A stretch of DNA of 64,000 nt, from IMG/VR virus record IMGVR_UViG_3300040801_004532, positions 184,137 to 248,136 of that record, one strand, 5' to 3'. Under the pieces are notes generated by a model, which was given only the letters and a program-made list of their open reading frames with translations, was not told the origin of the DNA and did no database searches. Position numbers and translations under genes: made by a program. Shown piece by piece: positions 2,401 to 58,351 of the stretch. Every line of letters starts with the position of its first letter. The stretch's first letter is position 1.

Positions 2401-2777
2401 CAGTTATAAATGATATTTTGAAAGAAATGAAAACAACAGATCTGACCCAACAGGTCAGACAATTTTGTGATATAATAACAAAAGAAGAAAGAGAAAAATT
2501 TAAAAATCCGGAACTATTACCGAGAGGTGCCAATGTTTTCCTTTCAATTGAAGTACCAGGGAGAAGCGATAAGGAAATCGGTTTTTTAACATTAGAACGT
2601 GAAGGAGAAGAAGACTATTTAATTGTCTATCATACCCTGGAAAAATATAGAGTTTCATCTGATCCAGAGAATATGATACCACCAAGACGAAGAAAAGTAT
2701 GGGCAGTTAATGAAAACAAGGCTGAAAAAATTTTAACCCAGTTTGCTAAAACCGTGAAACTTTTAAGAGGTGAATAA
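2397..2777 (+). CDS. Hypothetical protein
   Basis: ATGA overlap with upstream gene, SD-like GGGTGAG, abuts next gene. Confidence 0.6.
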   Translation: MTVINDILKEMKTTDLTQQVRQFCDIITKEEREKFKNPELLPRGANVFLSIEVPGRSDKEIGFLTLEREGEEDYLIVYHTLEKYRVSSDPENMIPPRRRKVWAVNENKAEKILTQFAKTVKLLRGE

Positions 2778-5351
2778 ATGAAAGATGTTCTGTTAGGTAC
2801 TTCGAATCTAGGAGAAAATCGAGCAGTTGAAGAGATAAGGATTAGCCCAAATTATGCAAATCTGATAATATCAACATTCGAAGGTACAAAGGAGGATGAT
2901 TCTACCCCAGCTATTAAACGAAAAACTATATTCACTAAAGATTATATTTCCAAATTAAATGAGTCAAATAAATTATTTACTGGAAATGTTATGCCTCCGA
3001 ATTGCAGATATATAGAACCAATCAACAGAGGGGTCATTGCAGTTATTGAAGAACCCCCTTCATTTAGGACAATTTTTGTTGATAGAGACCTCCGGGAGGA
3101 ATTTAATGTATTATCAAAACAAGGACGCTTGGATGAATATGAAATACCAAAGAATTTCTTAGAGAAAAACAGACAACCATACTACCTTAATTTAGCAATA
3201 CCTTATACCATCTTTCTTATGTGGATAACGGAATATTTCAGCGTTGGAATAACTGAAGTATATTTTCGTACAAATCAATTGATGGGTCTTTCAGACAACC
3301 TTCTTTTAGCTCCATTTTTAAATATACCAACTGAGCAACGAATTTGCTATCAATCTGGAAATAAATGTATATCCCTAACTGCAGCTATACAACAAGGGAT
3401 TAAGGCCTTTTGGGAATCAACATTTAACTCAGATTATACACACAATTATGAAAGTTATAAAGAAACCCCAGTCGTTGGAAATTATCTTGAATGGCAAGCT
3501 ATGTCTAAAATAAATCCATTGTTTATCTATAACGCAGACTGGCAAGTTAGGCCTTATAATTTAGGTCAAAGAATTAACAATTTAATTGAGCAGGCAGGAG
3601 GAAGGTCAAAAAATAAATTCGGTTATGCAGAACTTGCTGACTTATTTTATTCAAGACTAGATTCAGGCGTTGATATAAAACCTTCTCCAAGATCTAAAAA
3701 TAAATATAGATTGTTTTTTGATATAGCAAATAGTCTATATTTAGATGATATACTTCATATTGAAGTTGGCGATACATTTAAAACACATGATGGAAAGATA
3801 GCATATATTGACTCTCTTGCTGGATTTTCAGATGGGAGCGAAATTAAATATATCCAAATAGATATTAATGGAAAAAAACATCTGATGAAATATACAAAGG
3901 AATGTAAAAAATTCCTTTTTGATAAAGTAAAAGAAGACCGATTTGCCAAAGAATATACGTTATCAAATGGCCAGGTGATTAAGGAAGGTGATATACTTAT
4001 TATAAAACCAACTAAATCTATGGAAATTTTCAGACGAGTTGAATATATAAGAAAAAGCCGTGGCCTTGAAGAAGATGCAGAAATAAGAGTTGGTCGAAAT
4101 TATTACCTTGCATCAAGATTAAAAGCTGAAAAGTTAGATGCTGATGAACCCATATATAAAGGTGTAAAACTAATAAAAGATAAAGAGTATATTATCTCTA
4201 CTGGTGGAGGTGGTATATTTTCTGAGGGTTATAGATGTAAATTTGAAAAACTTGATGCTCACAGAGATTCGTTAGTAGCATCATTTATTCAAAGTGGGGG
4301 ACGAAGACGAACTCTAAACCTGTCGGTTCCAAGACAAACCCAACTAGCTTATCCACTTGATCAAACTAAGCCACTTAAGACAGGAATCTCAAAAATAGGG
4401 AGAAAAGTCTTCACAGTAACTAAAAATGGATCTCATCCAAGCAAAGAAGGAATGTGGCAAGTGGGTCCATCTCTAATATTTGACGGCAGTTATGCAGTAA
4501 ATGCTTTAACTGTTGGGGATTTTATTAAAGAACTATATGATGACGATAAATTTCATATATCCGGGGTAGATTTTGATATTGATTTTGCAATTGGTGAAAA
4601 GGTTGTCGTAGCCAATTGGGAAGACCCCCTTTCTGTTCTATCTGTAAAAACTATTCAGGGGTTTAAGGAAACAGATAATCATTTCGATTTTGTCCTTTCA
4701 GATAAAGCAGGCAATTTAACAACAGAGCAATTTATTGATCCCCAATCAAATATCTATTCTGGCAAAATTAGAAAGGTTACAAATAAATGGGGACGATTAT
4801 CAGTTGGTACAAAAATTATTGCTGATGTACCAGGAATCCCCAACTTTCCGAAGAAGGACGTAAATATTATTGTTGCTTTCATTATTGATATACCAGACGA
4901 ACCGTTAGTATTGTGTTCAAATGGTTGTACGTTATGGTATAACGATGTCGTAGAAAAATTTAAGAAGATAAAGATGGGATCAAAACAATGGGAAAAGCTA
5001 CAACATGTTCCCCTAGATTTATCAAAGATTAAATTTCAGGCAGGGGATGTGGTTAACGGATTCTCTGACTTTAGAGAGTCTGGTGGATACCTTTTATATG
5101 ACCCATCACCAACCAGATCACTGAAAGCAATGCCAATGAATGTTATGCATATTGGAGACGAAGGATATCATTATGTTGCTGATAAATATTTTATGAATGA
5201 TATGATTTTCGATTGTATTCCAGCTCCAAGAGTCGCAACAACTAAAGTTGCCGATTCTGATATAGTTAAGGGATATTTAAATATTAATAGTTACCAGATT
5301 GAAGAAGATGATAGTTCAATATTTTCATTTCTGAAACCAAAGGAGAATTAA
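2778..5351 (+). CDS. Prokaryotic E2 family D (PRTRC protein B-like) domain fused to about 600 aa of beta-rich, possibly SH3/KOW-like, repeats
   Basis: IEEPPSFRTIFV, LAIPYTIF, LLLAPFLNI..ICY and FWESTFNSD resemble Prok-E2_D. Lies directly upstream of JAB and ThiF genes. Confidence 0.65.
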   Translation: MKDVLLGTSNLGENRAVEEIRISPNYANLIISTFEGTKEDDSTPAIKRKTIFTKDYISKLNESNKLFTGNVMPPNCRYIEPINRGVIAVIEEPPSFRTIFVDRDLREEFNVLSKQGRLDEYEIPKNFLEKNRQPYYLNLAIPYTIFLMWITEYFSVGITEVYFRTNQLMGLSDNLLLAPFLNIPTEQRICYQSGNKCISLTAAIQQGIKAFWESTFNSDYTHNYESYKETPVVGNYLEWQAMSKINPLFIYNADWQVRPYNLGQRINNLIEQAGGRSKNKFGYAELADLFYSRLDSGVDIKPSPRSKNKYRLFFDIANSLYLDDILHIEVGDTFKTHDGKIAYIDSLAGFSDGSEIKYIQIDINGKKHLMKYTKECKKFLFDKVKEDRFAKEYTLSNGQVIKEGDILIIKPTKSMEIFRRVEYIRKSRGLEEDAEIRVGRNYYLASRLKAEKLDADEPIYKGVKLIKDKEYIISTGGGGIFSEGYRCKFEKLDAHRDSLVASFIQSGGRRRTLNLSVPRQTQLAYPLDQTKPLKTGISKIGRKVFTVTKNGSHPSKEGMWQVGPSLIFDGSYAVNALTVGDFIKELYDDDKFHISGVDFDIDFAIGEKVVVANWEDPLSVLSVKTIQGFKETDNHFDFVLSDKAGNLTTEQFIDPQSNIYSGKIRKVTNKWGRLSVGTKIIADVPGIPNFPKKDVNIIVAFIIDIPDEPLVLCSNGCTLWYNDVVEKFKKIKMGSKQWEKLQHVPLDLSKIKFQAGDVVNGFSDFRESGGYLLYDPSPTRSLKAMPMNVMHIGDEGYHYVADKYFMNDMIFDCIPAPRVATTKVADSDIVKGYLNINSYQIEEDDSSIFSFLKPKEN

Positions 5352-7057
5352 TGTTTACAGTATTCGTGAATGATGGCACACAGGAAATGCCAGACGATGA
5401 TATTATGTATATTGTTGGGAAAGAGGGTATATTCCTAAAGAAAAAAATGGGAATTATGGAAAGCATTGCTCCCGTTAAAAACATTTCTATTCTAGAGAGT
5501 GTCGGTTCAATGGCGAAAATGCATATTCCGCCCATTCCTGGTCCAACATTTGCAAAGGCGGTTTCCTTTTTCAGAGAAGTTTATAAAGAACATTTTGGAG
5601 AGTCGATTGTTCTTATATTCTTCAATGAAAAAAGTGGAAGATATAAATTATTTCCGCCACATCAAAAGGTTACATCTGCATCATTAGATTACAATAGAGG
5701 CATTACCATCGAAGGATGGACTATGGTTGGAACAATTCATAGTCATGGAGGTATGTCAGCATTCCATTCGGGTGTTGATGATGATGATGAAAAAACATTC
5801 GATGGATTGCATATTACAGTTGGAAATGTAAAAGATGAGGATGTAAGCATCTCTGCATCTATTGTATCCAACGGCTATCGCTTTATGATTGAACCAGAAG
5901 AATATATAAAGCAAGTCAAAAAGACAAAAGAAATTGATGAAGAAAGAACAAGCTATTCAACCAAAGTTTATAAATATGATCCAGTTCAAAAGAAAACTGT
6001 GCTTGATGTAGAGGCAAGCAAAAAAAGAGCCTATAGCTGGAGAAAATATGATAAACGATATAGAGTTATGGTTCCCGAAAGCAAAAGCAAACATCCAGAA
6101 ACATGGATGAACAATGTTGAAAAGGGGACTTATGCCTACAGACGTGGTGGATATTACGGCGGTTATTACGGCAATTATGGGGGATGGGGACATCATTACG
6201 ATAGAAGTGCATGGGGTCAAAGATTCCTGCCTGCCAAAACCCCTACCCAGACAACAAAACCAGGATCACCTCCGTTAAATGTTGGTCCATCGGCCAATGT
6301 AAAACCCGTTGAATTTCCAACTCATGATATACCAGTAGACCCAGATATGCCTTGCCTTACATGCAAGCATAGAGAGTGTAAAATTCTGGGTGAAGCAGAA
6401 GACGAATTTGATGAAGATTTTTATAAATGCGAGAACTGTGGTACCATATACCATGGTGAAATTGATATTTGCGATAAGTGCAATACAGATGATCATTTAA
6501 TTCTTATTGAGGCCAAAGATATGAAAGACCTATATGAGCCTCTTGTTCTTGATGAAATTGACAGAGATGCAGCTATAGCAGCACAACCAGATCAGCTTGG
6601 CTTTACATCATGCCCAGTTTGCAAAAGCGTATTTATGCGATTGGAAACTGATGACGAATGCCCATTTTGTAGTGCAGCGCTTGAAGGAGACAATGAATTA
6701 TTAACAAAACAAGTCGAATGCCCGTGGTGCTATCAAGGGGTATATGAAACAAAATTAGATCATCAACGACGGTGCCCATATTGCCGAAATGAAATCCCTT
6801 TGGATGCCAAACTTTTGACCATAGGATTTGATCCAGATGATGAAATTGAAAATCATATGAGATCTGATTCCGGGCCAGAAGATGAACAATCTGAAGATTT
6901 TCATGAAGAGGTCTTGCGTCAAGCTAAGCAAGCCGACGAATCAATCGAACGAATCCCCGATCCCAGTAAATCTGAAATTCCTATTTCATCCAGATTTACA
7001 GCTAAAAGGATCAAAGATATGATGCGTAAAGCATTTAGGGGGAAAGGTCATGCCTGA
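5351..7057 (+). CDS. JAB/MPN+ metalloprotease (Prok-JAB, PRTRC protein A-like) with Gly/Tyr-rich linker and multiple CxxC zinc ribbons
   Basis: JAMM motif GTIHSHGGMSAFHSGVD (HxH-x7-S-x2-D), DGLHITVG. C-terminal half has CENC/CDKC, CPVC/CPFC and CPWC/CPYC pairs. Confidence 0.85.
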   Translation: MFTVFVNDGTQEMPDDDIMYIVGKEGIFLKKKMGIMESIAPVKNISILESVGSMAKMHIPPIPGPTFAKAVSFFREVYKEHFGESIVLIFFNEKSGRYKLFPPHQKVTSASLDYNRGITIEGWTMVGTIHSHGGMSAFHSGVDDDDEKTFDGLHITVGNVKDEDVSISASIVSNGYRFMIEPEEYIKQVKKTKEIDEERTSYSTKVYKYDPVQKKTVLDVEASKKRAYSWRKYDKRYRVMVPESKSKHPETWMNNVEKGTYAYRRGGYYGGYYGNYGGWGHHYDRSAWGQRFLPAKTPTQTTKPGSPPLNVGPSANVKPVEFPTHDIPVDPDMPCLTCKHRECKILGEAEDEFDEDFYKCENCGTIYHGEIDICDKCNTDDHLILIEAKDMKDLYEPLVLDEIDRDAAIAAQPDQLGFTSCPVCKSVFMRLETDDECPFCSAALEGDNELLTKQVECPWCYQGVYETKLDHQRRCPYCRNEIPLDAKLLTIGFDPDDEIENHMRSDSGPEDEQSEDFHEEVLRQAKQADESIERIPDPSKSEIPISSRFTAKRIKDMMRKAFRGKGHA

Positions 7058-7736
7058 AAACCTAAATATTGTTATAATAGGGCTGGGAGGTATTGGTTCT
7101 GTTTTATCAGAAAGATTAAGTCGATTTCTAAATTATAATAGAGAATTGAAAACAAATATACTATTAGTTGATGGTGATTCATACGAGCCAAAAAATCAAG
7201 ATAGACAAGATTTCCTACAATTCGGAAACAAAGCCGAAATTAAGGCTGATGAATTAGCGATGAAATTTGGCGAGATTGAATTTGATGCCGTTGGTGAATA
7301 TATAAACGACGGCAATATTTCAGAAACAATACGGGATGGAGACATTATCTTCATTTGTGTTGACAATCACAAATCCAGAATGATAATTAACAATTACTGT
7401 AAAACTTTAACCAATGTTATTTTAATTTCTGGTGGGAATGAGCTTACAGATGGAAATGCACAACTTTATGTCAGAGAAGGAGGTGTGGATAAAACTCCCG
7501 ACTTGTGTACATACCATCCAGAGATAGCAAATCCCGACGATAAATTACCCGAAGAAATGTCTTGTGAAGAATTATCCCAGTCAGAGCCACAGTTGTATTT
7601 TACAAATCTAGGAGTGGCTACTCTTATGTGTTGGATGTTTTATAATGCGTTTGTCAATAAAGTATATGATAGATCCGAAGCTTATTTCGATATTCTTACA
7701 ATGTCTGCAGACTCCAAAATCCGAGTTACAAAGTGA
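7050..7736 (+). CDS. ThiF/E1-like adenylating enzyme (PRTRC ThiF-like)
   Basis: IIGLGGIG Rossmann loop, VDGDSYEPKNQDRQ, CVDNHKSR, SGGNE, candidate catalytic Cys in MSCEE, QLYFTN. Confidence 0.9.
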   Translation: MPENLNIVIIGLGGIGSVLSERLSRFLNYNRELKTNILLVDGDSYEPKNQDRQDFLQFGNKAEIKADELAMKFGEIEFDAVGEYINDGNISETIRDGDIIFICVDNHKSRMIINNYCKTLTNVILISGGNELTDGNAQLYVREGGVDKTPDLCTYHPEIANPDDKLPEEMSCEELSQSEPQLYFTNLGVATLMCWMFYNAFVNKVYDRSEAYFDILTMSADSKIRVTK

Positions 7737-7788
7737 ATTGTGAATCTCGGATCAACCAAACTTTTTCTTTCGAAGGGAGAAATGAACA

Positions 7789-8262
7789 ATGGGTGCAACT
7801 TTTACTCGTGATCAACTGGAAGTCAAGACCGCAGTCGAACTGAAACGTATGTGCGTGGACGAGCTGGGAATCCCCGGGATGACCAAAAAGCCGAAGGCCG
7901 TGGTCATCAACGCAATCATGGAAAAATTCGGGACCAGAACCGTGGCCTCCGGCGGCACCATCTCCAAAGATGGTGGCAAAATGACCGGAATGGAATGGCA
8001 GGCCCGAAGTGTCATGACCAAACCGGGTGCTCCTACCGGTGCCAAAACAACCACAACCATCCATGTTTCCTGCGGTGCCTCCGCCGGGAATTTCCCCGTA
8101 GCGGGCCGCAAGGTTTCCGAAGTCGGGGAATTCCTCCGGGAAGTTCTGAACGTGGATCGCCTATCGACCGGCCTGGTCAACGGCCATGAAGTCGACGCCG
8201 GCTATGTCCTGAAACCCGGCGACAATCTCGAGTTCCTCAAACCGGCAGGTAAAAAGGGATAA
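7789..8262 (+). CDS. Ubiquitin-like (beta-grasp) modifier with N-terminal Rho-N/HEH-like helical domain
   Basis: N-terminal LEVKTAVELKRMCVDELGIPGMTKKPKAVVINAI is Rho_N-like. C-terminal IHVSCG..VAGRKVSEV..LNV..LVNG..VLKPGDNLEFLKPAGKKG is beta-grasp-like with a terminal Gly. Confidence 0.8.
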   Translation: MGATFTRDQLEVKTAVELKRMCVDELGIPGMTKKPKAVVINAIMEKFGTRTVASGGTISKDGGKMTGMEWQARSVMTKPGAPTGAKTTTTIHVSCGASAGNFPVAGRKVSEVGEFLREVLNVDRLSTGLVNGHEVDAGYVLKPGDNLEFLKPAGKKG

Positions 8263-8289
8263 ACTGCCATATTAAGCAGTATGTTAGAA

Positions 8290-8309
8290 GGGGGGCCTCC
8301 GGGCCCCCC
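8290..8309 (+). terminator. GC-rich hairpin with UNCG tetraloop after the Ubl gene (attenuator or mRNA stabiliser)
   Basis: GGGGGGCC-TCCG-GGCCCCCC 8-bp stem with only a weak U tract. A second small stem ACTGC..GCAGT lies at 8263-8280. Confidence 0.55.
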
Positions 8310-8337
8310 AATCTTAAAAAAGAGAGGAAATGTATTA

Positions 8338-9234
8338 GTGCTTCGTAAAGTGACAGTAATTGGACTTGGAACTCTTGGTGGGTTCCTTTGCAAGCACATA
8401 TCAGAACTAGAGAATATAAAAGAAATGGTTATCGTTGATAATGATATTGTGGAAAGCAAAAATGTTTTCTCATCTATTTACAAATATTCTCACATTGGCG
8501 AATATAAGGTCGACGCTCTAAAGGAAATAATTGAGGACGATGTTGCTGTCACAATCAGGAAACAAGATTATAGAGAAGGAAGTACAATTTTACCACTCAG
8601 CGATCTAGTAATTGATTGTCGTGATGTGGTTTGTGATAGAAAAGGCGAAATTGATGTAAGATTATTTATATCAGAAAGAATTCTTATTTTCGATTGTAGA
8701 AAATTTGTCAGAAATACTTGTAGTTATGATGGTAGTTATTCTTTAAAATTGAACAAAAGCGAAATAAACAAAGCAGCCTTTTTCGCTGCTCAAATAATAA
8801 ATAGCGAAGAACTCCCCGATATGATAAAAAATAATATGGTTCAAAGAATTGATTTAAATCTATTGCCATCTGTAATGAGCAGAGCAATAAGAAGAACCCT
8901 TGAAAATAAGATAGATATAATTTATGATCTAACAGAGAATGCAAGAAGGTTACATTGCATTGATGAAAATATCCGACCAATCTTAACATTAAATAAACAA
9001 AAAGATACAAAAGTTTTTGTTGGTACAAGGGATGATACCAGAAAATTTCCAGAGGTAATAACGAGCAAGTATCAAATAATACCACAAAATTCATTAAAAG
9101 ATTCTTTCGATGTAATTCAAAAGTTAACTGAAGTTGTTCAAAGACAACCAGGCGTAAGAAATTTCATAGTTACAGTAAGGAGCGAAAATGGGGAAGATTT
9201 TGTCGAGTTACTGGAAGAAACAGGAGCCGCGTGA
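8338..9234 (+). CDS. Second ThiF/E1-like Rossmann protein, truncated fold plus unknown C-terminal domain
   Basis: VIGLGTLGG, VDNDIVESKN, YKVDAL, DLVIDCRD. Likely start is GTG 8338 after SD GAGAGG, because the track start at 8281 runs through the hairpin. Confidence 0.7.
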   Translation: MLRKVTVIGLGTLGGFLCKHISELENIKEMVIVDNDIVESKNVFSSIYKYSHIGEYKVDALKEIIEDDVAVTIRKQDYREGSTILPLSDLVIDCRDVVCDRKGEIDVRLFISERILIFDCRKFVRNTCSYDGSYSLKLNKSEINKAAFFAAQIINSEELPDMIKNNMVQRIDLNLLPSVMSRAIRRTLENKIDIIYDLTENARRLHCIDENIRPILTLNKQKDTKVFVGTRDDTRKFPEVITSKYQIIPQNSLKDSFDVIQKLTEVVQRQPGVRNFIVTVRSENGEDFVELLEETGAA

Positions 9235-9881: not shown

Positions 9882-12548
9882 ATGCCAAAGTTATTGGATT
9901 ATTCTGCATTTTGTGAAAACCTAGAGGAAGTTTCCTCTCTAAAAGTGTTTGGAAAGAAAAAGTTTCATCCACATGGTCTGTTCTCCGAGCAAATTTTCGG
10001 CCCGATAAAAAATTATACTTGCCAATGTGGCATCTATTATGGAATTTCTAAATCGGGCGGTAAATGCGACCTTTGTGGGGTCGATATTGTTAATAGTGAT
10101 GAACGAAGAAAAAGATTTGCAAAAATCAAAATACCAATACCAGTTGTCAATCCAATCTTTTATGATTTGCTTGCAGAGATTGGAGGAAAAACATTAAAGC
10201 ATGCAATTGATGAATTGATGCGTAATGACAAAAGCTTCCTTTATATGGATGGCGGTGAGCATATTATCAGCACAGATGAACCCCCAGATGGAGTACGAAT
10301 ATACGAAAGAACAGATGCAATAATGAAGCTAGTGAGTGATCTAGCAAATCTGTTTGCAAACGATGGGGTAGAAGAATGGAAATTAATTACAAACAATATA
10401 GATAGCCTTTTGATAAACCAAATAATCGTTTTACCTCCGGATCTCAGACCAACATCTGCTTCTGGTGGCGGTAAACATTTGATGGATAAAATCAATAGGT
10501 ATTATGTTCAGATATTAACAAAGAAAGAAATTATGAAAGATACAATGCTTGATATTATACGAGACAAGAAATTATATTATACCTACTTCAAGCAATTGCA
10601 GAAAGATGTAAATGAATTATACCATCGTATATTAGAAAAGATGGCTAAAAAAGAAGGGTTGATCAGAGGAAACATTTTGGGGAAACGAATTGATTTCTCC
10701 GGTAGAGCAGTCATTACTCCTGATCCAACCCTCAACCTTGATGAGTGTGTTTTACCATATACAATGGTTCTGGAGATATTTAAACTTCCGATTGCAAAAC
10801 GAATCATTCAGCTTGGTAAATTTAAACTATTGAATAAAGCTATTGATTTTGTTGATAGATGTATTGAAACAAATTCTCCAGTATTATGCAAAATCTGTGA
10901 AGAGATAACCAAAGATGAGGTATGTATTCTAAACCGTCAACCATCTCTTCATAAACTTGGAATGCTTGGATTTAATATTAAACTAACATTGGATAAGGTT
11001 ATAAAAATACATCCGCTTGTTTGTCCTCCATTCAATGCAGATTTCGATGGAGATCAAATGGCAGTTTATATCCCAATTACAGAAGAAGCAAAACAAGAAG
11101 TTCGTGAAAAAATGTTTGTTACAAAAAATCTAAGTAGTCCGGCAAATGAGGGGTTGACAACAACACCGAGTCAAGATGTAATCCTTGGTATTTATTTTAT
11201 CACATCAGAAGATTATCCAGATCGAGAAGAAGGTTTTAAAATTTTCAATGACTGTCTGCCTTCTGATTATCCAGAAATAAAAGAAATCATAAATAAAAAT
11301 AAATTGATGGTTATTTTAAATGATATTAAAGATAGATATCCAGAAAACACAACAATGAAAGTACTAGATTCAATTAAAAGAGTTGGTTTCAAATATGCAA
11401 CTCTTTTAGGTTCAACAATGTCACTTGATGATTTTGATATTGCTGGCGTCGAAAAAGTGAAGAGTGATATATTTGGAAAAGATGATGTAAGAGAGCAATT
11501 AACCGCTTTTTCTAATCCAGAAGTAACCAGTTTTCTAAAAGATAATTTTCCATATGCTTACATGATCGAATCTGGAGCAAGAGGAAGCTGGGATCAAGCC
11601 AAACAGCTAATATTGGCAAGAGGGTTCATCTCAAATTTTGAAGGCGAAATTCTTCCTGTACCGATTAAACATAGTTTGGTTGAAGGGTTAACTCAAGAGG
11701 AATTCTTTTATTCAACATATGGATGTAGAAAAGGTCTTCTTGATGTTGCGTTGAATACAGGTACAAGCGGATACTTATCTAGAAAATTAATTTTTACATG
11801 TGCGAACCTTCAACTAGATGAAGGACTTGATGATTGCGGAACAACTGACCTATTAGAAGTCGATGTTAAAAACGAAAGAAAAGCAAGAATGTTAGTTAAT
11901 CGCTATTATCTAAATGGCGGAAAACTAGTAAAAATTACACCAGATAACTATAAAGATATAGTTGGAAAAACAATTGAAATAAGAAGTCCGATTTTATGTA
12001 ACTCGCCAAAACTTTGCAAGATTTGTTACGGCGATCTTCATAAAAAATTAAACAGTAGGTTTGTTGGAATCATTGCAGCTCAAACATTGGGCGAGCGAGG
12101 AACTCAGCTTGTATTAAGAACCTTTCATACATCTGGTTCAGCGATTATCAAAGGGGTCGATGATTATAAAGATCAATCAATGAGACAAAGTGATATTATT
12201 GGAGATCTTGCATCGGTCGCAAGGATGCTACATAAATTTACAGGCAAGACATACGTTCAAATAGTAGACGAATTATTTGAGGTTTACAATAAAGATATTT
12301 ACCATGTCCATTTTGAATGTGTAGTTGCACAGCTAATGTGGCACAATAATAAAAAGTGGAGATTATTGAAAAATAGAGATACGGTAAAACCAACGTATTA
12401 TAGTATTCAATCAGTGCCAAATCAAGAGAGTTGGATATTGGCAATGGCATTTTCAAACCCCAAGCGTAGCATTTTACGGGGTATTGTATATGAAGGTAAA
12501 TATTCAGGGATAATGGACAAAATTCTCAAAGGAGAAAAAATTGAATGA
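9882..12548 (+). CDS. rpoC: DNA-directed RNA polymerase beta' subunit (phage-encoded, compact, unsplit)
   Basis: HGLFSEQIFGP, Zn site CQCG..CDLCG, LGKRIDFSGRAVI, LNRQPSLH, catalytic FNADFDGD, SGARG, SGYLSRKL, TQLVLRTFH. Confidence 0.97.
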   Translation: MPKLLDYSAFCENLEEVSSLKVFGKKKFHPHGLFSEQIFGPIKNYTCQCGIYYGISKSGGKCDLCGVDIVNSDERRKRFAKIKIPIPVVNPIFYDLLAEIGGKTLKHAIDELMRNDKSFLYMDGGEHIISTDEPPDGVRIYERTDAIMKLVSDLANLFANDGVEEWKLITNNIDSLLINQIIVLPPDLRPTSASGGGKHLMDKINRYYVQILTKKEIMKDTMLDIIRDKKLYYTYFKQLQKDVNELYHRILEKMAKKEGLIRGNILGKRIDFSGRAVITPDPTLNLDECVLPYTMVLEIFKLPIAKRIIQLGKFKLLNKAIDFVDRCIETNSPVLCKICEEITKDEVCILNRQPSLHKLGMLGFNIKLTLDKVIKIHPLVCPPFNADFDGDQMAVYIPITEEAKQEVREKMFVTKNLSSPANEGLTTTPSQDVILGIYFITSEDYPDREEGFKIFNDCLPSDYPEIKEIINKNKLMVILNDIKDRYPENTTMKVLDSIKRVGFKYATLLGSTMSLDDFDIAGVEKVKSDIFGKDDVREQLTAFSNPEVTSFLKDNFPYAYMIESGARGSWDQAKQLILARGFISNFEGEILPVPIKHSLVEGLTQEEFFYSTYGCRKGLLDVALNTGTSGYLSRKLIFTCANLQLDEGLDDCGTTDLLEVDVKNERKARMLVNRYYLNGGKLVKITPDNYKDIVGKTIEIRSPILCNSPKLCKICYGDLHKKLNSRFVGIIAAQTLGERGTQLVLRTFHTSGSAIIKGVDDYKDQSMRQSDIIGDLASVARMLHKFTGKTYVQIVDELFEVYNKDIYHVHFECVVAQLMWHNNKKWRLLKNRDTVKPTYYSIQSVPNQESWILAMAFSNPKRSILRGIVYEGKYSGIMDKILKGEKIE

Positions 12549-15544
12549 AAATAGTCAATCCTACCTACAAAATTCAGGATGAAGACAATAGCATCTTCAC
12601 TCTGAGAAAACGGGACTACGAAAATATTTTACCCTTAGCGAGACAAATTCTTGAACCAGTAAGAGAAATTGGTTTCGAAATTACAGAACTTGAACTAAGA
12701 GATTCAAGATTTTCTTCCGGTGAACTTTCAAGAACGATAAAGCAAACTCTTGTTATTCGCCTTCAAAAAGGAACCTCAAATATTGATCTTTCAATATTCG
12801 TTCCAAAATTAGTTGACGACAATTATATATTTATCAATGGAAGGAAAAAGATTCCGTTATTTCAATTATTTGATATTCCTGTTGTAACAAGGGGCGAGTC
12901 GATAAAATTAAGAACTAATGTAGCAACATTGATGGTGGTTGTAGAAAAAGAGGAACCAAAAATTAATATAAGTTTTCTCGGAAAGAAAGTGCCTCTATCA
13001 TTATTGATGTTAGCATATTATGGCCCAGAAGTACTAAACAAACGATTTAATTTATCACAGTTCAATATAAAAGATACAAGTAATTTAATGGAGTTGTTAA
13101 TCGAAGATATAAAACTATTTTGGATTGAGTCAAAGGGTTATACCCAAGATGATTTTATAGTTGAATTAGGACGCGATTATTCAAGATATAATGCAAAATC
13201 AAAGGGCGAAGATGTTGTATATGCCCTAGATTTGATTCCAAAAATTGATCCAATCACAGCTCAATTTTTACAAACCGGATCAATTATCGAAGAGTTATTA
13301 TTGGCATTACAAACAGGCGATATAGATGATACGTTATTTACAAATAAGAGAATTAGATGTTTTGAATATATGATCTTTTCTAAACTATCTAAAATTGTTT
13401 TCGATCTTTGTTTTTCAAACAGGACAAGCAGACAACCAAAATTCAACATTAACTCAAATCAAATTATTTCAGAATGTAATGTTTCAGATATTGTTCAGTT
13501 TGATTTTTCAATCAACCCAATTGAAGAATTAACTAAAATGTCAAGAGTTAGTCTTTTGGGTCCAGGCGGATTTAAAAGAGAAAACATTCCAAGGCATTTA
13601 CGAGATATTTGCCCGTCGATGTTTGGACGGATTTGTCCGGTTGATACACCAGATCGTGATAATTGTGGTGTATTGCAAAATTTTGTTTCAAATGTGAAAC
13701 TTGAGGAAAACATGAGGTTCTCAGAGGAAATCTCTGAACAACCAATATCAATTCCTGTTTCGATGGTTCCGTTCTTGAAGAATGATGATCCAACCAGATT
13801 ACAAATGGCATCATCACAAATGAGACAGGCGATTCTTTTAAAAGATTTTGATGAACCCATGATAAAATCTGGATGTGAGGGACTATATACAGACAAAACC
13901 CAATTTGTCAAAAAGGCGAAGAAAAATGGGGAAGTGATCCACGTTGACAACAAGTATTTAATTGTAATCTATGATGATGGTGAAGCAGAAATCTTTGACA
14001 TAATGTATCGAAAAATTTATGTTGAGCACATGGATTTTATGAATATCTATGTCAAAGCGGGTGACAAGTTCAAGGCTGGGGATATACTTGCTGAAAGTAA
14101 TTTTTGTAAAGATGGAAATATATGCTTTGGAAAAAATCTCTTGACAGGAGTTATGGTTTACTACGGTAATAATTATGAAGATGGAATTGTTGTTTCAGAT
14201 AGACTTGTTAATGAAGATGTTTTAACATCAGTACATTTTAAAGATCTATCATTTACACTACCACCAAATAAGGTCTTGTTATCATTACAAGAAGGAAGAT
14301 ACAAGCCGTTGCCGAAAGCTCTGGAACAATTAAGCGCAGGGTCTCCTTATGCAAAGATAAAAACTCTTTCTACCGATGATATGTATTCTGTATTTTCAGA
14401 AGAAATTTCATTGGAAGCTGAAAAATCATTTATTATTCCTGAGGTAAATATCTATGCAAATACATGGAATGATGAAATTCCTGAGTTCAATGACTGGATT
14501 GAAAAGACAGTCAGTGAACAACAAGAGCGAGATGCAGGATTAAGAAAAATTATAAAGGACAAACTTCCATCCGAAATATCTAAGAAATTCATTAAGGAAA
14601 GCGGATTGGAACTGTCTTCATTTGTTGGAAAGTATAAAATGAAGCGAGAAAAAATAAACGGCATCCATATTGAAATGTATGGTATTCACTTTAGAAAAAT
14701 AAAAGTGGGTGATAAAATAGCGAACAGGCATGGAAATAAAGGAGTTATTTCCAGAATTGTTCCTCATGAAAAGATGCCAAAATTAGAAGATGGAAGACAT
14801 CTTGATATCTGCATCAATCCATTGGGTATTATCTCAAGAATGAACATCGGACAGTTGTTCGAATTGCAATTATCAATGTCTTTATATGATTTACAACAGA
14901 CATTGCTAAAAATGATTAACGAAGAAAAACCCCAAGACGAGATTAAAAAATATCTTATGGGGTATATAAATACTGTGGATAAAACAAAAACCGGATGGTA
15001 TTCAGAGCAATTTGAGAATCAATTACCAAAAGAAATCACAAACGAATTTGTTGCAACCTTAGTTTTAATTCAACCACCTTTTGAGTCATGTAAATTAGAT
15101 GATATTAAAAAGGCTCTTGAATATACCGGTACCGAATTTAAACAAAAGGTTTATGATCCGTTATCAAAAACCTATTTTAAAAATCCCATTGCTGCAGGTT
15201 ACATTTATTTCCTAAGGATGGTTCATATTGCAGAAGAAAAATTAGCAGCGAGAGGCATTGGAGCATATGCAAAAAGAACCCTTCAACCATTAGGGGGAAG
15301 GAAAAATAAAGGTGGCCAAAGATGCGGCGAAATGGAAACAGCTTGTATTATTGGTCATGATGCACCAATAAATCTATTTGAATTTCTTACTACAAAATCT
15401 GACTGTATAGATTTGAAAAATTTGTACATCAGGAAGTTTATTGATCCAAATTTAGTTGACGAAAGTAAAGAGGTTGATTCCATTCCGGAATCTGTAAAAT
15501 TGTTAAATGCGTACTTAACAGTTATTGGAGTAAAACAAAAATGA
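12545..15544 (+). CDS. rpoB: DNA-directed RNA polymerase beta subunit (phage-encoded, unsplit)
   Basis: GRICPVDTPDRDNCG, MASSQMRQA, NYEDG, GDKIANRHGNKGVIS, INPLGIISRMNIGQ, GGQRCGEME. ATGA overlap with rpoC. Confidence 0.97.
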   Translation: MKIVNPTYKIQDEDNSIFTLRKRDYENILPLARQILEPVREIGFEITELELRDSRFSSGELSRTIKQTLVIRLQKGTSNIDLSIFVPKLVDDNYIFINGRKKIPLFQLFDIPVVTRGESIKLRTNVATLMVVVEKEEPKINISFLGKKVPLSLLMLAYYGPEVLNKRFNLSQFNIKDTSNLMELLIEDIKLFWIESKGYTQDDFIVELGRDYSRYNAKSKGEDVVYALDLIPKIDPITAQFLQTGSIIEELLLALQTGDIDDTLFTNKRIRCFEYMIFSKLSKIVFDLCFSNRTSRQPKFNINSNQIISECNVSDIVQFDFSINPIEELTKMSRVSLLGPGGFKRENIPRHLRDICPSMFGRICPVDTPDRDNCGVLQNFVSNVKLEENMRFSEEISEQPISIPVSMVPFLKNDDPTRLQMASSQMRQAILLKDFDEPMIKSGCEGLYTDKTQFVKKAKKNGEVIHVDNKYLIVIYDDGEAEIFDIMYRKIYVEHMDFMNIYVKAGDKFKAGDILAESNFCKDGNICFGKNLLTGVMVYYGNNYEDGIVVSDRLVNEDVLTSVHFKDLSFTLPPNKVLLSLQEGRYKPLPKALEQLSAGSPYAKIKTLSTDDMYSVFSEEISLEAEKSFIIPEVNIYANTWNDEIPEFNDWIEKTVSEQQERDAGLRKIIKDKLPSEISKKFIKESGLELSSFVGKYKMKREKINGIHIEMYGIHFRKIKVGDKIANRHGNKGVISRIVPHEKMPKLEDGRHLDICINPLGIISRMNIGQLFELQLSMSLYDLQQTLLKMINEEKPQDEIKKYLMGYINTVDKTKTGWYSEQFENQLPKEITNEFVATLVLIQPPFESCKLDDIKKALEYTGTEFKQKVYDPLSKTYFKNPIAAGYIYFLRMVHIAEEKLAARGIGAYAKRTLQPLGGRKNKGGQRCGEMETACIIGHDAPINLFEFLTTKSDCIDLKNLYIRKFIDPNLVDESKEVDSIPESVKLLNAYLTVIGVKQK

Positions 15545-15717: not shown

Positions 15718-16031
15718 AACCAACATGTCCGATTTGTGGTGGAGAAATTTTACTTGAACATATATTAAATTTATCTCATGTATATAAAATAGATAAAGAT
15801 AAATTTATAAGAGAGGACAACAATGATTTAATTAATAGTGGGGGATGGGTTCGTTTAATCTGCGAAAATGACAGAGAGCATCAATTAGAACCCACCCCCA
15901 CATCAGATATACCATATAATGATTTTATAGAATGGAAAGACGCTATCACTGATAAATTTTATGATTCTTGTGATAAAAAAAATATTGAAGGAGAACTAAT
16001 TCATGGAATGTTTGCCAGATATTCAGTGTGA
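15714..16031 (+). CDS. Zinc-ribbon protein
   Basis: Likely start ATG 15714 after GGAG. MKPTCPICG ... LICENDREH. Confidence 0.55.
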   Translation: MKPTCPICGGEILLEHILNLSHVYKIDKDKFIREDNNDLINSGGWVRLICENDREHQLEPTPTSDIPYNDFIEWKDAITDKFYDSCDKKNIEGELIHGMFARYSV

Positions 16032-16866
16032 CTCTCCCAATGTCCCTATTCCAATTCAGCAGGTTGGAGTTGAAAATGTTGAGGTCCCTTTTAGAATCGA
16101 ATCGAAATATGGGGGATATTATCAACTCAACGCAAATGTATCAATGAGGACAAATCTAAATGAAAAGACAAAGGGAATTTCAATGTCCCGCCTGCTCTTA
16201 ACATTGAAACCATATTTGGATTTGCCTCTGAAGCATACTCTTATAAAACAAATTTTAATTGATTTGAAAGACAATGTTGGCAGCGAAGCAAGTTATATGA
16301 AATTTGAATTTCGAATGCCAATTAAAAGAAAATCTATTAAATCAGATAATGAATTTCCAATCTATTACAAATGTAGGTTTGAAGGACAACTTATTCAAAA
16401 TGATAACGGTTCAAATGACAGTTTATTCAGATTTTACCAAGGAGTTGTAATTCAATATGCTTCGTATTGTCCTTGCTCAGCAGAATTATGCAATGATCTA
16501 ACAACAAAAGGAAGTATTGGTTTTCCTCATAACCAAAGATCATTTGCTGATATTCTTGTTGAAGTACAGGAAGATTATTATGTTTGGTTAGAAGATATTA
16601 TTGAAAGCGTTGAGTCAAAAATCAAAACTCTTCCATATCCTGTTATCAAAAGGGTTGATGAGCAAGAGATTGCAAGAGTTGCAGCCGAAAATCCAATGTT
16701 CGTTGAAGATGCGATAAGATTGATTTCACAATCATTAAACCAAAATGAAAAAATCCATGATTGGATTGTAAAATGTAGTCATCAAGAATCAATTCATACA
16801 TCTGAGGCAATTGCAATTAACTGGAAAGGTATTAACGAAGGGTTTAACGGAAGGCGATATTTATGA
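16003..16866 (+). CDS. folE2: GTP cyclohydrolase I type B (FolE2/MptA family)
   Basis: PIQQVGV, KGISMSRL, YCPCS, HNQRS, FVEDAIR and ESIH..A are the family motifs. Confidence 0.93.
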   Translation: MECLPDIQCDSPNVPIPIQQVGVENVEVPFRIESKYGGYYQLNANVSMRTNLNEKTKGISMSRLLLTLKPYLDLPLKHTLIKQILIDLKDNVGSEASYMKFEFRMPIKRKSIKSDNEFPIYYKCRFEGQLIQNDNGSNDSLFRFYQGVVIQYASYCPCSAELCNDLTTKGSIGFPHNQRSFADILVEVQEDYYVWLEDIIESVESKIKTLPYPVIKRVDEQEIARVAAENPMFVEDAIRLISQSLNQNEKIHDWIVKCSHQESIHTSEAIAINWKGINEGFNGRRYL

Positions 16867-17567
16867 TAAATGTTGGGATTTCTTATAGATTTTTTGATAA
16901 TTACCCAGAGTTTCCTATCCCGAAAGATATCCAATTATCATATAAACTATATGAGGATTATATTAAAAATCGAGAAATCATCCTACATTCCATAGAAAAA
17001 AATAATATAAACTTACTAGCATCACACCTGCCCCTTGATACATTAAAAACAGAGTTTGAGAAAATCGGTGAGATGATCCAACAAATTGCCCTTTCGACAG
17101 GATGCTCAAAATTTGTTATTCACCCCAATAGGAATATTGAAAAATTCCTTGACTTTTTTATAAGATGTGTCCCAGCTCCAATCACATTATGCATTGAAAC
17201 ATTCGGATGGAAAAGCAGGAAGGTGTTCAGAACTCCGCTAGATATTATATGGGCTATCGAACAGTTTGGCAACGGAAGAATGTCAATGGTGATTGACACT
17301 TCACATATTGAAAGTCTTTGGTTTGACTACAAAATAATGCCATCGCTTCTTAGATATACCTCATTGATCCATCTATCAAATAGGGCAAAAGGACTGGGAC
17401 AACATCTTCCGTTTAATCATGGGGAAGGGAATTTAAATTTAGTTTCTTTTATAAAGGATCTTAAACATAGATATAATTGGTCAGGTGATATTATTTTGGA
17501 ATATATGCCAGAATATAGACACAAACTATTAAAGAACGAACAGTATATAAAGGAATTATTAAAATAA
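16863..17567 (+). CDS. Xylose isomerase-like/AP endonuclease 2 TIM-barrel metalloenzyme
   Basis: VIHP, CIET, IDTSH, IHLSN, QHLP, ILEY give the family metal-ligand pattern. Confidence 0.75.
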   Translation: MINVGISYRFFDNYPEFPIPKDIQLSYKLYEDYIKNREIILHSIEKNNINLLASHLPLDTLKTEFEKIGEMIQQIALSTGCSKFVIHPNRNIEKFLDFFIRCVPAPITLCIETFGWKSRKVFRTPLDIIWAIEQFGNGRMSMVIDTSHIESLWFDYKIMPSLLRYTSLIHLSNRAKGLGQHLPFNHGEGNLNLVSFIKDLKHRYNWSGDIILEYMPEYRHKLLKNEQYIKELLK

Positions 17568-38167: not shown

Positions 38168-39193
38168 ATGGAACAAGCAAGAGAATTGGTAATATTCGAT
38201 AAAATATTTAGAAATGAAAATTATGAACTTTTTTTTAATACCATGTCTGGATTCGAAATTCTTCGTGGTGTAAATGGGAAAGAAGATCCGTTTTGGTTAG
38301 AACTTCCATCTCTATTAGACATTGGAATTATGGGAACCTGCTATCACAATTGTCCATTTTGTTATCAAGGACATATTAAAGAACCAAATATGACTTTTGA
38401 AAATTACAAATGGATAATTAACCAGGTGAAACATCATACAAATCAGGTTGCTCTTGGTGGACGAGGGGACCCAAATAAACATAAGGACTTCAGAAAAATA
38501 GTTGAATATTCCAGGAATAGTGGTGTGGTTCCGAACTATACAACAAGCGGAATCGATCTGACGGATGAAGAAGTGGAGACATCAAAACTATGTGGTGCAA
38601 TAGCCGTGAGTGACTACGAAAAACCCTTTACATACCAAGCCTTAAAAATGTTCATGGATGCAGGTATAAAAACAAATATCCATCAAATTTTCTCATCAGG
38701 AACATTTACAAAATCAATGAAAATAATCTATGGTTATAGTCCATGGCAAAGTCAAAAAAGAGAAAAGGTTGACACTGAAAGATTGAATGCTGTAGTGTTT
38801 CTCCTATTCAAACCTCAAGGAGAAGGAAAAAATATACCAGCATTTATTCCAAGCGAATATCAACTAAAGACATTTTCAGAGATGGTATTAAAAGGCAAAG
38901 CAAAATTCAAAATTGGTATGGATAGTTGTTTGGTTAATCATTTAATAAGATATGCAACTCCAACGGATGGACAAATGATGTCACTTGATACCTGTGAGGG
39001 TGCAAGAATGTCAGCATATATTTCACCTGATTTAAAAATGATGCCTTGCAGCTTTTCAAGAAAAAGCAGTGGAGTACAACTATCAAATAAAAAATCAATA
39101 TCTAATGTATGGGAAAATTCAAGGATTTTCAAATCCTTCAGAAGTAAACTGAAAAGAAAACCGGATAAATGTCCAATAAATTTTGAGGTATAA
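38168..39193 (+). CDS. Radical SAM/SPASM-like protein
   Basis: CYHNCPFC, QVALGG, NYTTSG, C-terminal CEGA..MPCSF..CP. Confidence 0.9.
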   Translation: MEQARELVIFDKIFRNENYELFFNTMSGFEILRGVNGKEDPFWLELPSLLDIGIMGTCYHNCPFCYQGHIKEPNMTFENYKWIINQVKHHTNQVALGGRGDPNKHKDFRKIVEYSRNSGVVPNYTTSGIDLTDEEVETSKLCGAIAVSDYEKPFTYQALKMFMDAGIKTNIHQIFSSGTFTKSMKIIYGYSPWQSQKREKVDTERLNAVVFLLFKPQGEGKNIPAFIPSEYQLKTFSEMVLKGKAKFKIGMDSCLVNHLIRYATPTDGQMMSLDTCEGARMSAYISPDLKMMPCSFSRKSSGVQLSNKKSISNVWENSRIFKSFRSKLKRKPDKCPINFEV

Positions 39194-56159: not shown

Positions 56160-56462
56160 TTACATCTTTTGTTTTGGGTCAAAACATAAAAATCGTTTAC
56201 AAACATCTGGTCTAAAACTTTCGTTGTATATTTTACATTTCCCGTTTTCTAGAAATTCACATTGACCATCGACAATTTCTAATATAGGAAGTCTCCCTTT
56301 AACACTTAAATTTTTTGCTCCATATTCTTTTAAAGCATTATATTCCTCTTTTGTCAGTCTTATATGTGGAAACCAATCTTTACAACAATCACAACAATCT
56401 GGAGGGCAAACTCCGGTTATTGGTTTACCTAATAATCTTCTATGTTTATTTTTTTTCATCAT
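56160..56462 (-). CDS. YkgJ/CxxCxxCC cysteine-cluster protein
   Basis: [24 protein letters not shown]. Confidence 0.8.
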
Positions 56463-58351
56463 ACTTGACCGCCATCACCAATGTCCCAATTATGATCATT
56501 TACTAATGCCTGTCTTGCTGTTAATGCTGCACCAGAAGAAAATTTACTATTACCGGCATCAAAGGATACATCATTTTGTACATCCTGTGCTTCCCAACCA
56601 ATTAGAAGAGCATCATAATTTGTTGTTGATAAGCCATGGGTAAAATTAAACATAAGTAGCATAGTTTGAACTGATGTAATATTCCAACCGCTTATATCTT
56701 GATCAAATGCAACTGCGTTATAAAACATTTCTCTCATATTTTGAACTAATGATGTATCCCAACCACCAATATCTTGATTAAATGCAGTTGCACCACTAAA
56801 CATAGTAACCATATCTGTAACAGAAGAAGTATTCCACCCTCCAATATCTTGATTAAATACATCTGCGCCCTGAAACATAGAATTCATATTTGTAACAGAG
56901 GTAGTATCCCATCCGCCAATATCTTGATTAAATGTAGTTGCACCACTAAACATACTCGCCATATTTGTAACAGAAGAAGTATTCCAACCGCTTATATCTT
57001 GATTAAATGCAGTTGCACCATAAAACATACTCGCCATATCTGTAACAGAAGAAGTATTCCAACCGCTTATATCTTGATCAAATGCAGTTACATCACTAAA
57101 CATACTACCCATATCTGTAACAGAAGAAGTATTCCAACCACCAATATCTTGATTAAAGGTATTTGTGTTATAAAACATACCCGCCATATTTGTAACAGAA
57201 GAAGTATTCCAACTTCCAATATCTTGATTAAATGTAGTTAAATTAGAAAACATATAACTCATATCTGTAACAGAGGTAGTATCCCAACCACCAATATCTT
57301 GATTAAATGCAGTTGCACCACCAAACATACTACCCATATCTGTAACAGAAGAAGTATTCCAACCACCAATATCTTGATTAAAGGTATTTGCGTTATTAAA
57401 CATACCCGCCATATCTGTAACTGATGATACATCCCACCCACTAATATCTTGATTAAACGCCTGTGCGTTATTAAACATACCCGCCATATCTGTAACTGAT
57501 GATACATCCCACCCACTAATATCTTGATTAAACGCCTGTGCGTTATAAAACATATAACTCATATCTGTAACTGATGATACATCCCACCCACTAATATCTT
57601 GATTAAACGAAGTCTTACTATAAAACATACCCGCCATATTTGTAACAGATGATACATCCCAATTTACTATATTTTGACTAAAATCAGACGCTCTATAAAA
57701 CATATAACTCATATTTGTAACTGATGATACATCCCATCCACTAATATCTTGGTTAAATTTGTCATTATAACTAAACATATAACTCATATTTTGGACTGAT
57801 GACACATCCCAATTTGAAATATTCCCATTAAATATAGTAGGCCCAACTCCTCCTTTCCCCTCTGAATCAGATCCAAACATATAAGTCATATCTTGAACTG
57901 ATGATACATCCAGTTGGATAATCGAAGTAGCATCAGCCATAGAAACACAATTTGCAAATGCATAACTCATATTAGTTGTTTCAGATAAATCTAAAACATC
58001 AGTAGCAGTTACGGTCATATTAATACAACCATAAAAATAACCACCAGCATTTCCTAATTTTAACGACCCCCATTTTTTTATTTCCCTTACTGCTGGAGCA
58101 TATGAGTTATTATTAAACCTAAATCCTTCAATAGTTCCTGTTATTGTTATTTCATATGGGCCGCTACCTGAATAATTATGATTTTTAGCTGAATCATTCC
58201 AAGAGGTAATTATATCATTACTACCATCACCCCATTCAACCTTAAAATTGTAATTACCATTGGATATTAATGGCAATTCAAATGGACTTGATGGTTCAAC
58301 TGTAAATATAAACTCTTGTGATTTTTTAAGAACAAATGAAATTGAAGTCAT
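56459..58351 (-). CDS. DUF285/BspA-family leucine-rich-repeat surface protein
   Basis: About 16 tandem 25-aa units [20 protein letters not shown], N-terminal VEWGDG cap, C-terminal NYDALLIGW. Confidence 0.92.
56680..57840 (-). repeat. 75-bp tandem coding repeats of the DUF285 protein
   Basis: Period-75 array. Some adjacent units near 57400-57600 are almost identical at DNA level. Boundaries approximate. Confidence 0.9.

Follow-up and report, generated by a model that had tools for sequence, protein, structure and literature searches.

The stretch analysed here (the window) covers 64,000 nucleotides, positions 184,137 to 248,136 of the 248,136-bp IMG/VR contig IMGVR_UViG_3300040801_004532. 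It is low in GC (about 35%) and densely coded. It carries a large terminase, a tail sheath, unsplit multisubunit RNA polymerase beta' and beta genes, and FolE2 and radical SAM genes. Scans with Rfam and for tRNAs returned no match in the window, and no DNA match was found in the INPHARED set of phage GenBank records. We concluded that the contig belongs to an uncultured jumbo myovirus-like phage. The gene under study encodes a small protein combining a Rho_N-type domain with a ubiquitin-like (Ubl) beta-grasp, and lies in a cassette with the following features, all on the plus strand:

2778..5351 (+), 857-aa protein (E2L) with an N-terminal E2-like domain (Prok-E2_D, residues ~170-243), N182 and Cys190 being invariant
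5351..7057 (+), 568-aa JAB/JAMM peptidase (E25, H130-x-H132-x7-S140-x2-D143) with a G/Y-rich stretch and 2-3 zinc ribbons, as read from its cysteine pairs
7050..7736 (+), 228-aa ThiF-type E1 (E1a) with complete ATP motifs (GxGGxG, D41, R52-Q53, D105-N106, R110) and an invariant Cys172
7773..7779 (+), strong Shine-Dalgarno sequence AAGGGAG, 9 nt before the ATG at 7789
7789..8262 (+), Ubl gene, 157 aa plus stop, a GC3 island
7801..7932 (+), Rho_N-type helix-extension-helix (HeH) domain of the Ubl protein (residues 5-48), with conserved basic positions K19, K33 and K36
7933..8052 (+), linker (residues 49-88)
8053..8259 (+), ThiS/MoaD/SUMO-like beta-grasp (residues 89-157) ending K151-P-A-G154-K-K156-G157
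8281..9234 (+), 317-aa second ThiF-like protein (E1b) that keeps the Gly-rich loop but has lost the R-Q and D-N motifs, probably an inactive partner of the E1

First, the existence and domain composition of the Ubl protein were examined. A sequence-only reading had proposed an N-terminal helix-extension-helix pattern, a Thr/Gly/Pro linker and a beta-grasp ending in PAGKKG, and this observation is confirmed. The protein belongs to a large family, with 398 homologues at the 90% clustering level and 769 clusters at the 50% level, and where taxa are recorded its nearest atlas clusters are almost entirely viral. Pfam and PHROGs searches with the single sequence gave nothing at default thresholds, and only family-level scans and profiles were informative. 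The window sequence alone matches Pfam Rho_N (PF07498) weakly (E 0.017-0.21, 15.4 bits against a cut-off of 24.9). In contrast, among 94 diverse N-domains of the family, 92 hit Rho_N (best 1.3e-12), 33 hit SAP and 7 hit HeH. A profile built from these N-domains detected the N-termini of Rho in the PDB, with Thermotoga 3l0o at 1.4e-8, 8hsj at 1e-5, Mycobacterium 7oqh at 7e-4 and E. coli Rho at 0.01-0.2. The motif L..xT..EL[RK]..C..xGI.G.[ST]K..K...I.AI is shared with Rho.

The AF2 model of residues 1-52 (pLDDT 80) has helices at 7-12, 15-26 and 36-47, with an extended segment between the last two. Its best Foldseek match is Rho 9ff7 (TM 0.70, rmsd 1.2 A). In a fold search that does not rely on Foldseek, Rho 1a62 ranked first among 48,161 chains (Z 6.8), with SAP domains of FAN1, Hcc-1, SLX4, Ku70 and PIAS and LEM domains high among the later matches. 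AFDB cluster hits are likewise named Rho_N or SAP. The full-length model is only moderate (pLDDT 64), and residues 50-92 have pLDDT below 50. Residues 49-63 vary in length and sequence while residues 64-88 are semi-conserved, S74, P79 and G84 being invariant among close homologues. The term linker is thus only partly apt.

Residues ~88-157 were matched by Foldseek to SUMO, TGS, MoaD, TtuB and RnfH beta-grasps with a probability of about 1.0 (TM by target 0.5-0.64 for SUMO, TGS, MoaD and TtuB). Of 120 family members, 113 hit Pfam TGS, 83 Ub-Mut7C and 79 ThiS. Searching PDB sequences with the full-length and beta-grasp profiles gave only noise or weak hits, namely a Dun1 FHA look-alike of the NG..V...Y.L..GD motif and SAMP2/PF1061 at E about 0.06-0.08. 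BFVD matches split the model into small phage beta-grasp proteins and stand-alone phage "Rho_N" proteins. No second copy of either domain exists in the window. The fusion is the normal state of the family: with a broad HMM, most relatives first scored as containing only the beta-grasp turned out to carry a divergent HeH domain, and 14 of 150 representatives carry two copies of it.

Next, we analyzed the C-terminal tail. K151, G154, K156 and G157 are invariant in 67/67 clade orthologues, and the tail is K-G in all of them rather than the usual G-G. Among 301 relatives with this tail, 143 end exactly at the Gly, 120 add one Cys and 38 have other extensions, including two to four beta-grasp units joined head-to-tail directly after the Gly. 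This is the precursor logic of ubiquitin, and also of the Type II Bil Ubls, in which the JAB enzyme BilC cleaves after the conserved Gly (PMC10557695). We looked for covariation of the additional Cys with the conserved Cys22 and Cys95. Both are more often present in the forms with the terminal Cys (89% against 57%), but this cannot be separated from shared ancestry.

The order E2L-JAB-E1a-Ubl-E1b is collinear in 69 IMG/VR loci, down to 38% Ubl identity, E1b being present in 69/69, and the core recurs in more distant contigs. The predicted catalytic residues are conserved. E2L has N182 and Cys190, in an HPN-like "N-I-x-x-x-x-x-I-C" context, in 58/58 orthologues. The JAB protein has E25 and an exact HxHx7SxxD motif in 41/41, and E1a has its ATP motifs and Cys172 in 64/64. 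The E2 assignment is borderline, since E2L matches Prok-E2_D at 25.0 bits against a cut-off of 25, although its atlas neighbours carry Prok-E2_D. The JAB protein scores 27 bits against Pfam Prok-JAB and matches NCBIfam PRTRC_A at 3.7e-10, and E1a matches PRTRC_ThiF over nearly its full length at 1.2e-10. Both PRTRC scores are far below the curated cut-offs (39.7 against 101.8 and 41.1 against 144.75, respectively). The best solved relatives of E1a are UBA5, the E1 part of Citrobacter BubCD (E 1.2e-4), Uba4 and MoeB. The PADLOC defence-system models gave no Bil or Bub membership: the Ubl, E2L and JAB proteins have no Bil hit and E1a hits BilD only at E 0.0015.

The INPHARED set contains no protein match to the Ubl. 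The ThiF genes of Bacillus jumbo phages found with E1a sit in an unrelated neighbourhood with no annotated Ubl, and a scan of GTDB species genomes found no relative. Literature searches found no description of a Rho_N-Ubl fusion or of this phage cassette.

The Ubl gene is also a sharp compositional island. Its GC is 0.56 and its GC3 is 0.64, against a GC3 of 0.14-0.36 (median 0.25) for the other 58 long ORFs (>=150 aa) of the window. Third positions are 41% C and CTG is the preferred Leu codon. In 68 orthologous loci, the GC3 of the Ubl exceeds that of its neighbours by 0.15 on average. The excess is above 0.1 in 48 of them, extreme in one locus, L070 (0.81 against 0.17), and varies widely among close relatives. 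We set aside recent horizontal transfer as unlikely because the amino-acid divergence of the Ubl tracks that of the RNAP and E1a genes across 67 loci (Spearman 0.75). The Ubl is about as conserved as E1a and somewhat less than the RNAP subunits (42-74% identity). A general expression effect is not supported by the tail sheath gene, whose GC3 is 0.20. Selection for host-preferred codons in a modifier consumed in quantity and made early is one possible cause and recurrent gene conversion is another, and we could not decide between them.

Taken together, these data led us to propose, with a probability of about 0.6, that the gene encodes the modifier of a phage-encoded ubiquitin-like conjugation cassette. 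The modifier reading is well supported by conserved context and residues. The sequences and models establish the fusion of a Rho_N-type HeH domain, through a flexible linker, to a ThiS/MoaD-like beta-grasp whose invariant tail ends in Gly157. The enzymatic steps, covalent attachment to proteins and any binding of nucleic acid are inferred, the enzymatic steps from the conserved neighbours and their catalytic residues, without biochemical evidence of any kind. In this view, E1a, perhaps paired with the degenerate E1b as an active/inactive heterodimer, would adenylate Gly157. In such a pairing, which is our inference, E1b would be an inactive partner like the inactive adenylation domain of BilD and of eukaryotic E1s. 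The Ubl would pass as a thioester to E1a Cys172 and/or to Cys190 of the E2-like domain, and would then be joined to amino groups of host or phage targets. The JAB peptidase would reverse conjugates and trim precursor forms, which are a single extra Cys in about 40% of relatives and head-to-tail poly-Ubl in a few. The window's copy already ends at Gly and would need no trimming. Because the reactive end is C-terminal, the HeH domain would travel with any conjugate.

The role of the HeH domain is the most speculative step. In our model it most likely docks the free or conjugated Ubl onto nucleic acid, or onto nucleic-acid-bound machinery of the phage's transcription and DNA-metabolism module. 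The sequence-only reading had inferred that conjugation would graft a DNA/RNA anchor onto target proteins rather than a degradation tag. This interpretation is only partly supported: the two-domain fusion with a free C-terminal Gly among E1-, E2- and JAB-like genes holds, but nucleic-acid binding is not shown, and we regard docking onto nucleic acid as tentative, rather less likely than not. In its favour, the domain is homologous to the helix bundle of Rho, described as positively charged and as assisting the primary RNA-binding site (PMC11347177), and is structurally similar to DNA-binding SAP domains. Positions 19, 33 and 36 are K/R in more than 90% of 128 family domains. The cassette neighbours are rich in zinc ribbons and include a WYL_2 domain, and the gene lies in the transcription and DNA-metabolism block of the genome. 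However, the N-domain is not markedly basic. Its net charge is +2 in the window copy and +0.8 on average, and 30 of 128 domains (23%) are net acidic, down to -9. In Rho, the OB-fold next to the bundle holds the primary RNA-binding site (PMC11347177), whereas here the bundle is followed by a linker and a beta-grasp. Synteny with the RNAP genes reflects one collinear phage lineage and is thus not independent evidence of a functional link.

The main alternative, which we consider less likely, is that the protein is the same modifier but that its HeH domain is a protein-protein handle. It could dock the Ubl onto its own E1, E2L or JAB, onto a target, or onto the phage or host RNA polymerase, or drive self-association. 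The acidic N-domains are consistent with this, and LEM and MANF/CDNF SAP-like domains of this fold bind proteins (PDB 7ndy, 6h9u and 9i5y). HeH-like modules also appear in phage baseplate structures, and the N-terminal accessory domains of bacterial Ubls, such as coiled coils and DUF1508 domains, are proposed to mediate self-association (PMC11601603). On the other hand, the three most conserved surface positions are basic, the closest homologue, Rho_N, sits next to an RNA-binding site, and most of the structural matches ranked next are DNA-binding SAP domains (FAN1, Ku70, SLX4 and PIAS).

A ThiS/MoaD-type sulfur carrier is unlikely. In that case the E1 would make a C-terminal thiocarboxylate donating sulfur to a nucleic-acid or cofactor modification, the HeH domain would guide it to DNA or RNA, and the JAB would only mature the precursor, as for QbsE/QbsD and CysO/Mec. 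Sequence hits to ThiS, SAMP2 and PF1061-like proteins, the resemblance of the E1 to ThiF, MoeB and Uba4, and the nearby radical SAM gene and 7-deazaguanine pathway gene (FolE2) speak for it, and JAB + E1 + ThiS sulfur-transfer operons have been described (PMC1779556). However, characterised carriers end in G-G and not K-G. No rhodanese domain, cysteine desulfurase or ThiG/MoaE/TtuA-like sulfur-insertion gene appeared among the proteins scanned in the window, which represents only 64 kb of the 248-kb genome. Moreover, an E2-like protein with an invariant Cys is conserved in the cassette, and head-to-tail poly-Ubl is a form of ubiquitin precursors that is not known among sulfur carriers. Finally, a non-conjugated HeH + TGS-like protein that binds RNA or regulates the neighbouring ThiF-like enzymes is very unlikely: TGS is the Pfam family hit by the most members, and TGS domains are ligand- or RNA-binding rather than conjugated, but the invariant Gly lies exactly at, or one residue from, the end, poly-Ubl precursor forms exist, and the protein is strictly linked to an E1 with intact adenylation motifs, an E2-like Cys and an intact JAMM peptidase.

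We compared the cassette with characterised systems. Bil (BilABCD) systems, especially Type II, share the four parts (Ubl, E2, JAB deubiquitinase and E1), a Ubl with a conserved Gly followed by 0 to several residues that the JAB removes (PMC10557695), and an E1 combining active and inactive adenylation units, which may here be two separate proteins. Here, however, the cassette is encoded by a phage and not by a bacterial defence island, and the E2-like domain is part of an 857-aa protein. The best family-level matches point to the Prok-E2_D operon type, possibly row 6d of the table of Iyer et al. 2006, and to the TIGRFAM PRTRC cassette (TIGR03735, TIGR03736 and related models). Row 6d lists a Ubl, a JAB, an E1-like and an E2-like protein as separate genes on mobile elements (PMC1779556). 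No Prok_Ub or alpha-hel2 match was seen, the Ubl carries an HeH domain, and no match to ParB, a relative of which belongs to the PRTRC cassette, appeared among the window proteins scanned, a scan that was not exhaustive. Bub systems work through oxyester intermediates with an E1 lacking a catalytic Cys (PMC11601596), whereas Cys172 of E1a and Cys190 of E2L are invariant. The cassette is therefore a phage-borne, divergent relative of the Bil / Prok-E2_D / PRTRC group and not a member of a curated family.

The sequence-only reading had also called this an unusual logic for a Ubl, which is overstated. Bacterial Ubls of Bil and Bub operons with N-terminal coiled coils, tandem DUF1508 domains or N/G-rich tails are already described, although a Rho_N domain is not among them (PMC11601603). 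In type II CBASS, the E1-E2 enzyme Cap2 attaches a cGAS-like protein to targets through a ubiquitination-like mechanism, accompanied by a JAB-family protein (PMC10557695), a precedent for grafting a functional module rather than a bare tag. There, the conjugated protein is an enzyme with no beta-grasp, E1 and E2 are fused, and only weak E1-level similarity to our cassette is seen. SUMO and ISG15 are not degradation tags either. What is new is the Rho_N-Ubl fusion itself, its residence as a conserved core gene of a phage lineage, and the split E1a/E1b arrangement.

A more far-reaching possibility, doubtful on present evidence but not excluded by it, is that a lineage of roughly 220-280 kb phages runs its own complete ubiquitin-like cascade during infection. 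It would weld a Rho-N-type nucleic-acid (or polymerase) docking module covalently onto chosen host or phage proteins, relocating them to DNA, RNA or the phage transcription machinery. This would be protein targeting by conjugation on the virus side of the conflict, and the atypical codon usage of this one gene would then reflect a need for large or very early supplies of a modifier consumed one molecule per conjugate.

Prokaryotic ubiquitin-like conjugation has so far been characterised in bacterial antiphage defence (CBASS Cap2/Cap3 and Bil), and Bub is predicted to act there too. Here, a complete-looking cassette is a conserved core feature of a phage lineage, and its modifier is fused to an independent globular domain. 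The family is large and almost wholly annotated as hypothetical, and its proteins are small and suited to in vitro reconstitution. If the cassette is active, viruses of bacteria would also use Ubl conjugation, offensively or for their own assembly and gene expression, and a Ubl could act as a covalent delivery vehicle for a docking domain.

We noted that the Ubl gene is a compositional island. Its GC3 is 0.64 against a median of 0.25 for every other long ORF, with a strong preference for C-ending codons and for CTG. The excess recurs, with varying size, in 48 of 68 orthologous loci, and is extreme in one of them, L070 (0.81 against 0.17). The gene and the other features of the window considered here are located as follows:
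997-2777: a radical SAM protein, a WYL_2 protein and a 126-aa protein
2778-5351: 857-aa protein with an E2-like N-terminus (E2L)
5351-7057: JAB protein
7789-8262: Ubl gene
8281-9234: second ThiF-like protein
9882-15544: RNA polymerase beta' and beta genes
16003-17567 and 38168-39193: FolE2, an endonuclease IV-like protein and a second radical SAM gene
56459-58351 (-): DUF285 repeat protein

Among the cassette members, the JAB protein exhibits, beyond its JAMM core, a G/Y-rich low-complexity stretch (res ~254-283) in some orthologues. It also contains two zinc ribbons conserved in 40-41 of 41 orthologues, and a third one in 18 of 41. These additions could form a substrate- or nucleic-acid-binding or E3-like part. 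The second ThiF-like protein, whose ATP motifs are degenerate, was detected in 69/69 loci, and its C-terminal part weakly resembles PDB 1yqh, a DUF77 protein. It may be the inactive half of a heterodimeric E1. Beyond the E2-like N-terminus, the remaining ~600 aa of the 857-aa protein show only low-TM resemblance to KOW/SH3-like repeat proteins. E2L is the fastest-evolving member of the cassette (22-57% identity, against 42-74% for the Ubl), and may be the target-recognition part. In a distant relative, protein P0151 (L002, positions 2690-3523) carries four head-to-tail beta-grasp units with no HeH domain, and is located near a ThiF gene and a reverse transcriptase gene.

We also considered the genes flanking the cassette. 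Just upstream of the E2-like gene are located a viperin- or SPASM-like radical SAM protein, a WYL_2 protein and a 126-aa protein of unknown function, which may or may not belong to the cassette. The first two are present in 57 of the 69 related loci and the third in 53, most of the loci lacking them beginning downstream of this position. Directly downstream of the cassette lie unsplit multisubunit RNA polymerase beta' (888 aa) and beta (999 aa) genes, both shorter than the bacterial subunits. In phiKZ- and PBS1-type jumbo phages these subunits are split. The gene order is collinear in all 69 related contigs.

A 630-aa protein made of six DUF285 repeats, with a score of 615 bits, may be a host-interaction protein and provide a hint to the host group. 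Finally, FolE2 (GTP cyclohydrolase I type 2), an endonuclease IV-like TIM-barrel protein and a second radical SAM gene together suggest a 7-deazaguanine-type DNA modification pathway.
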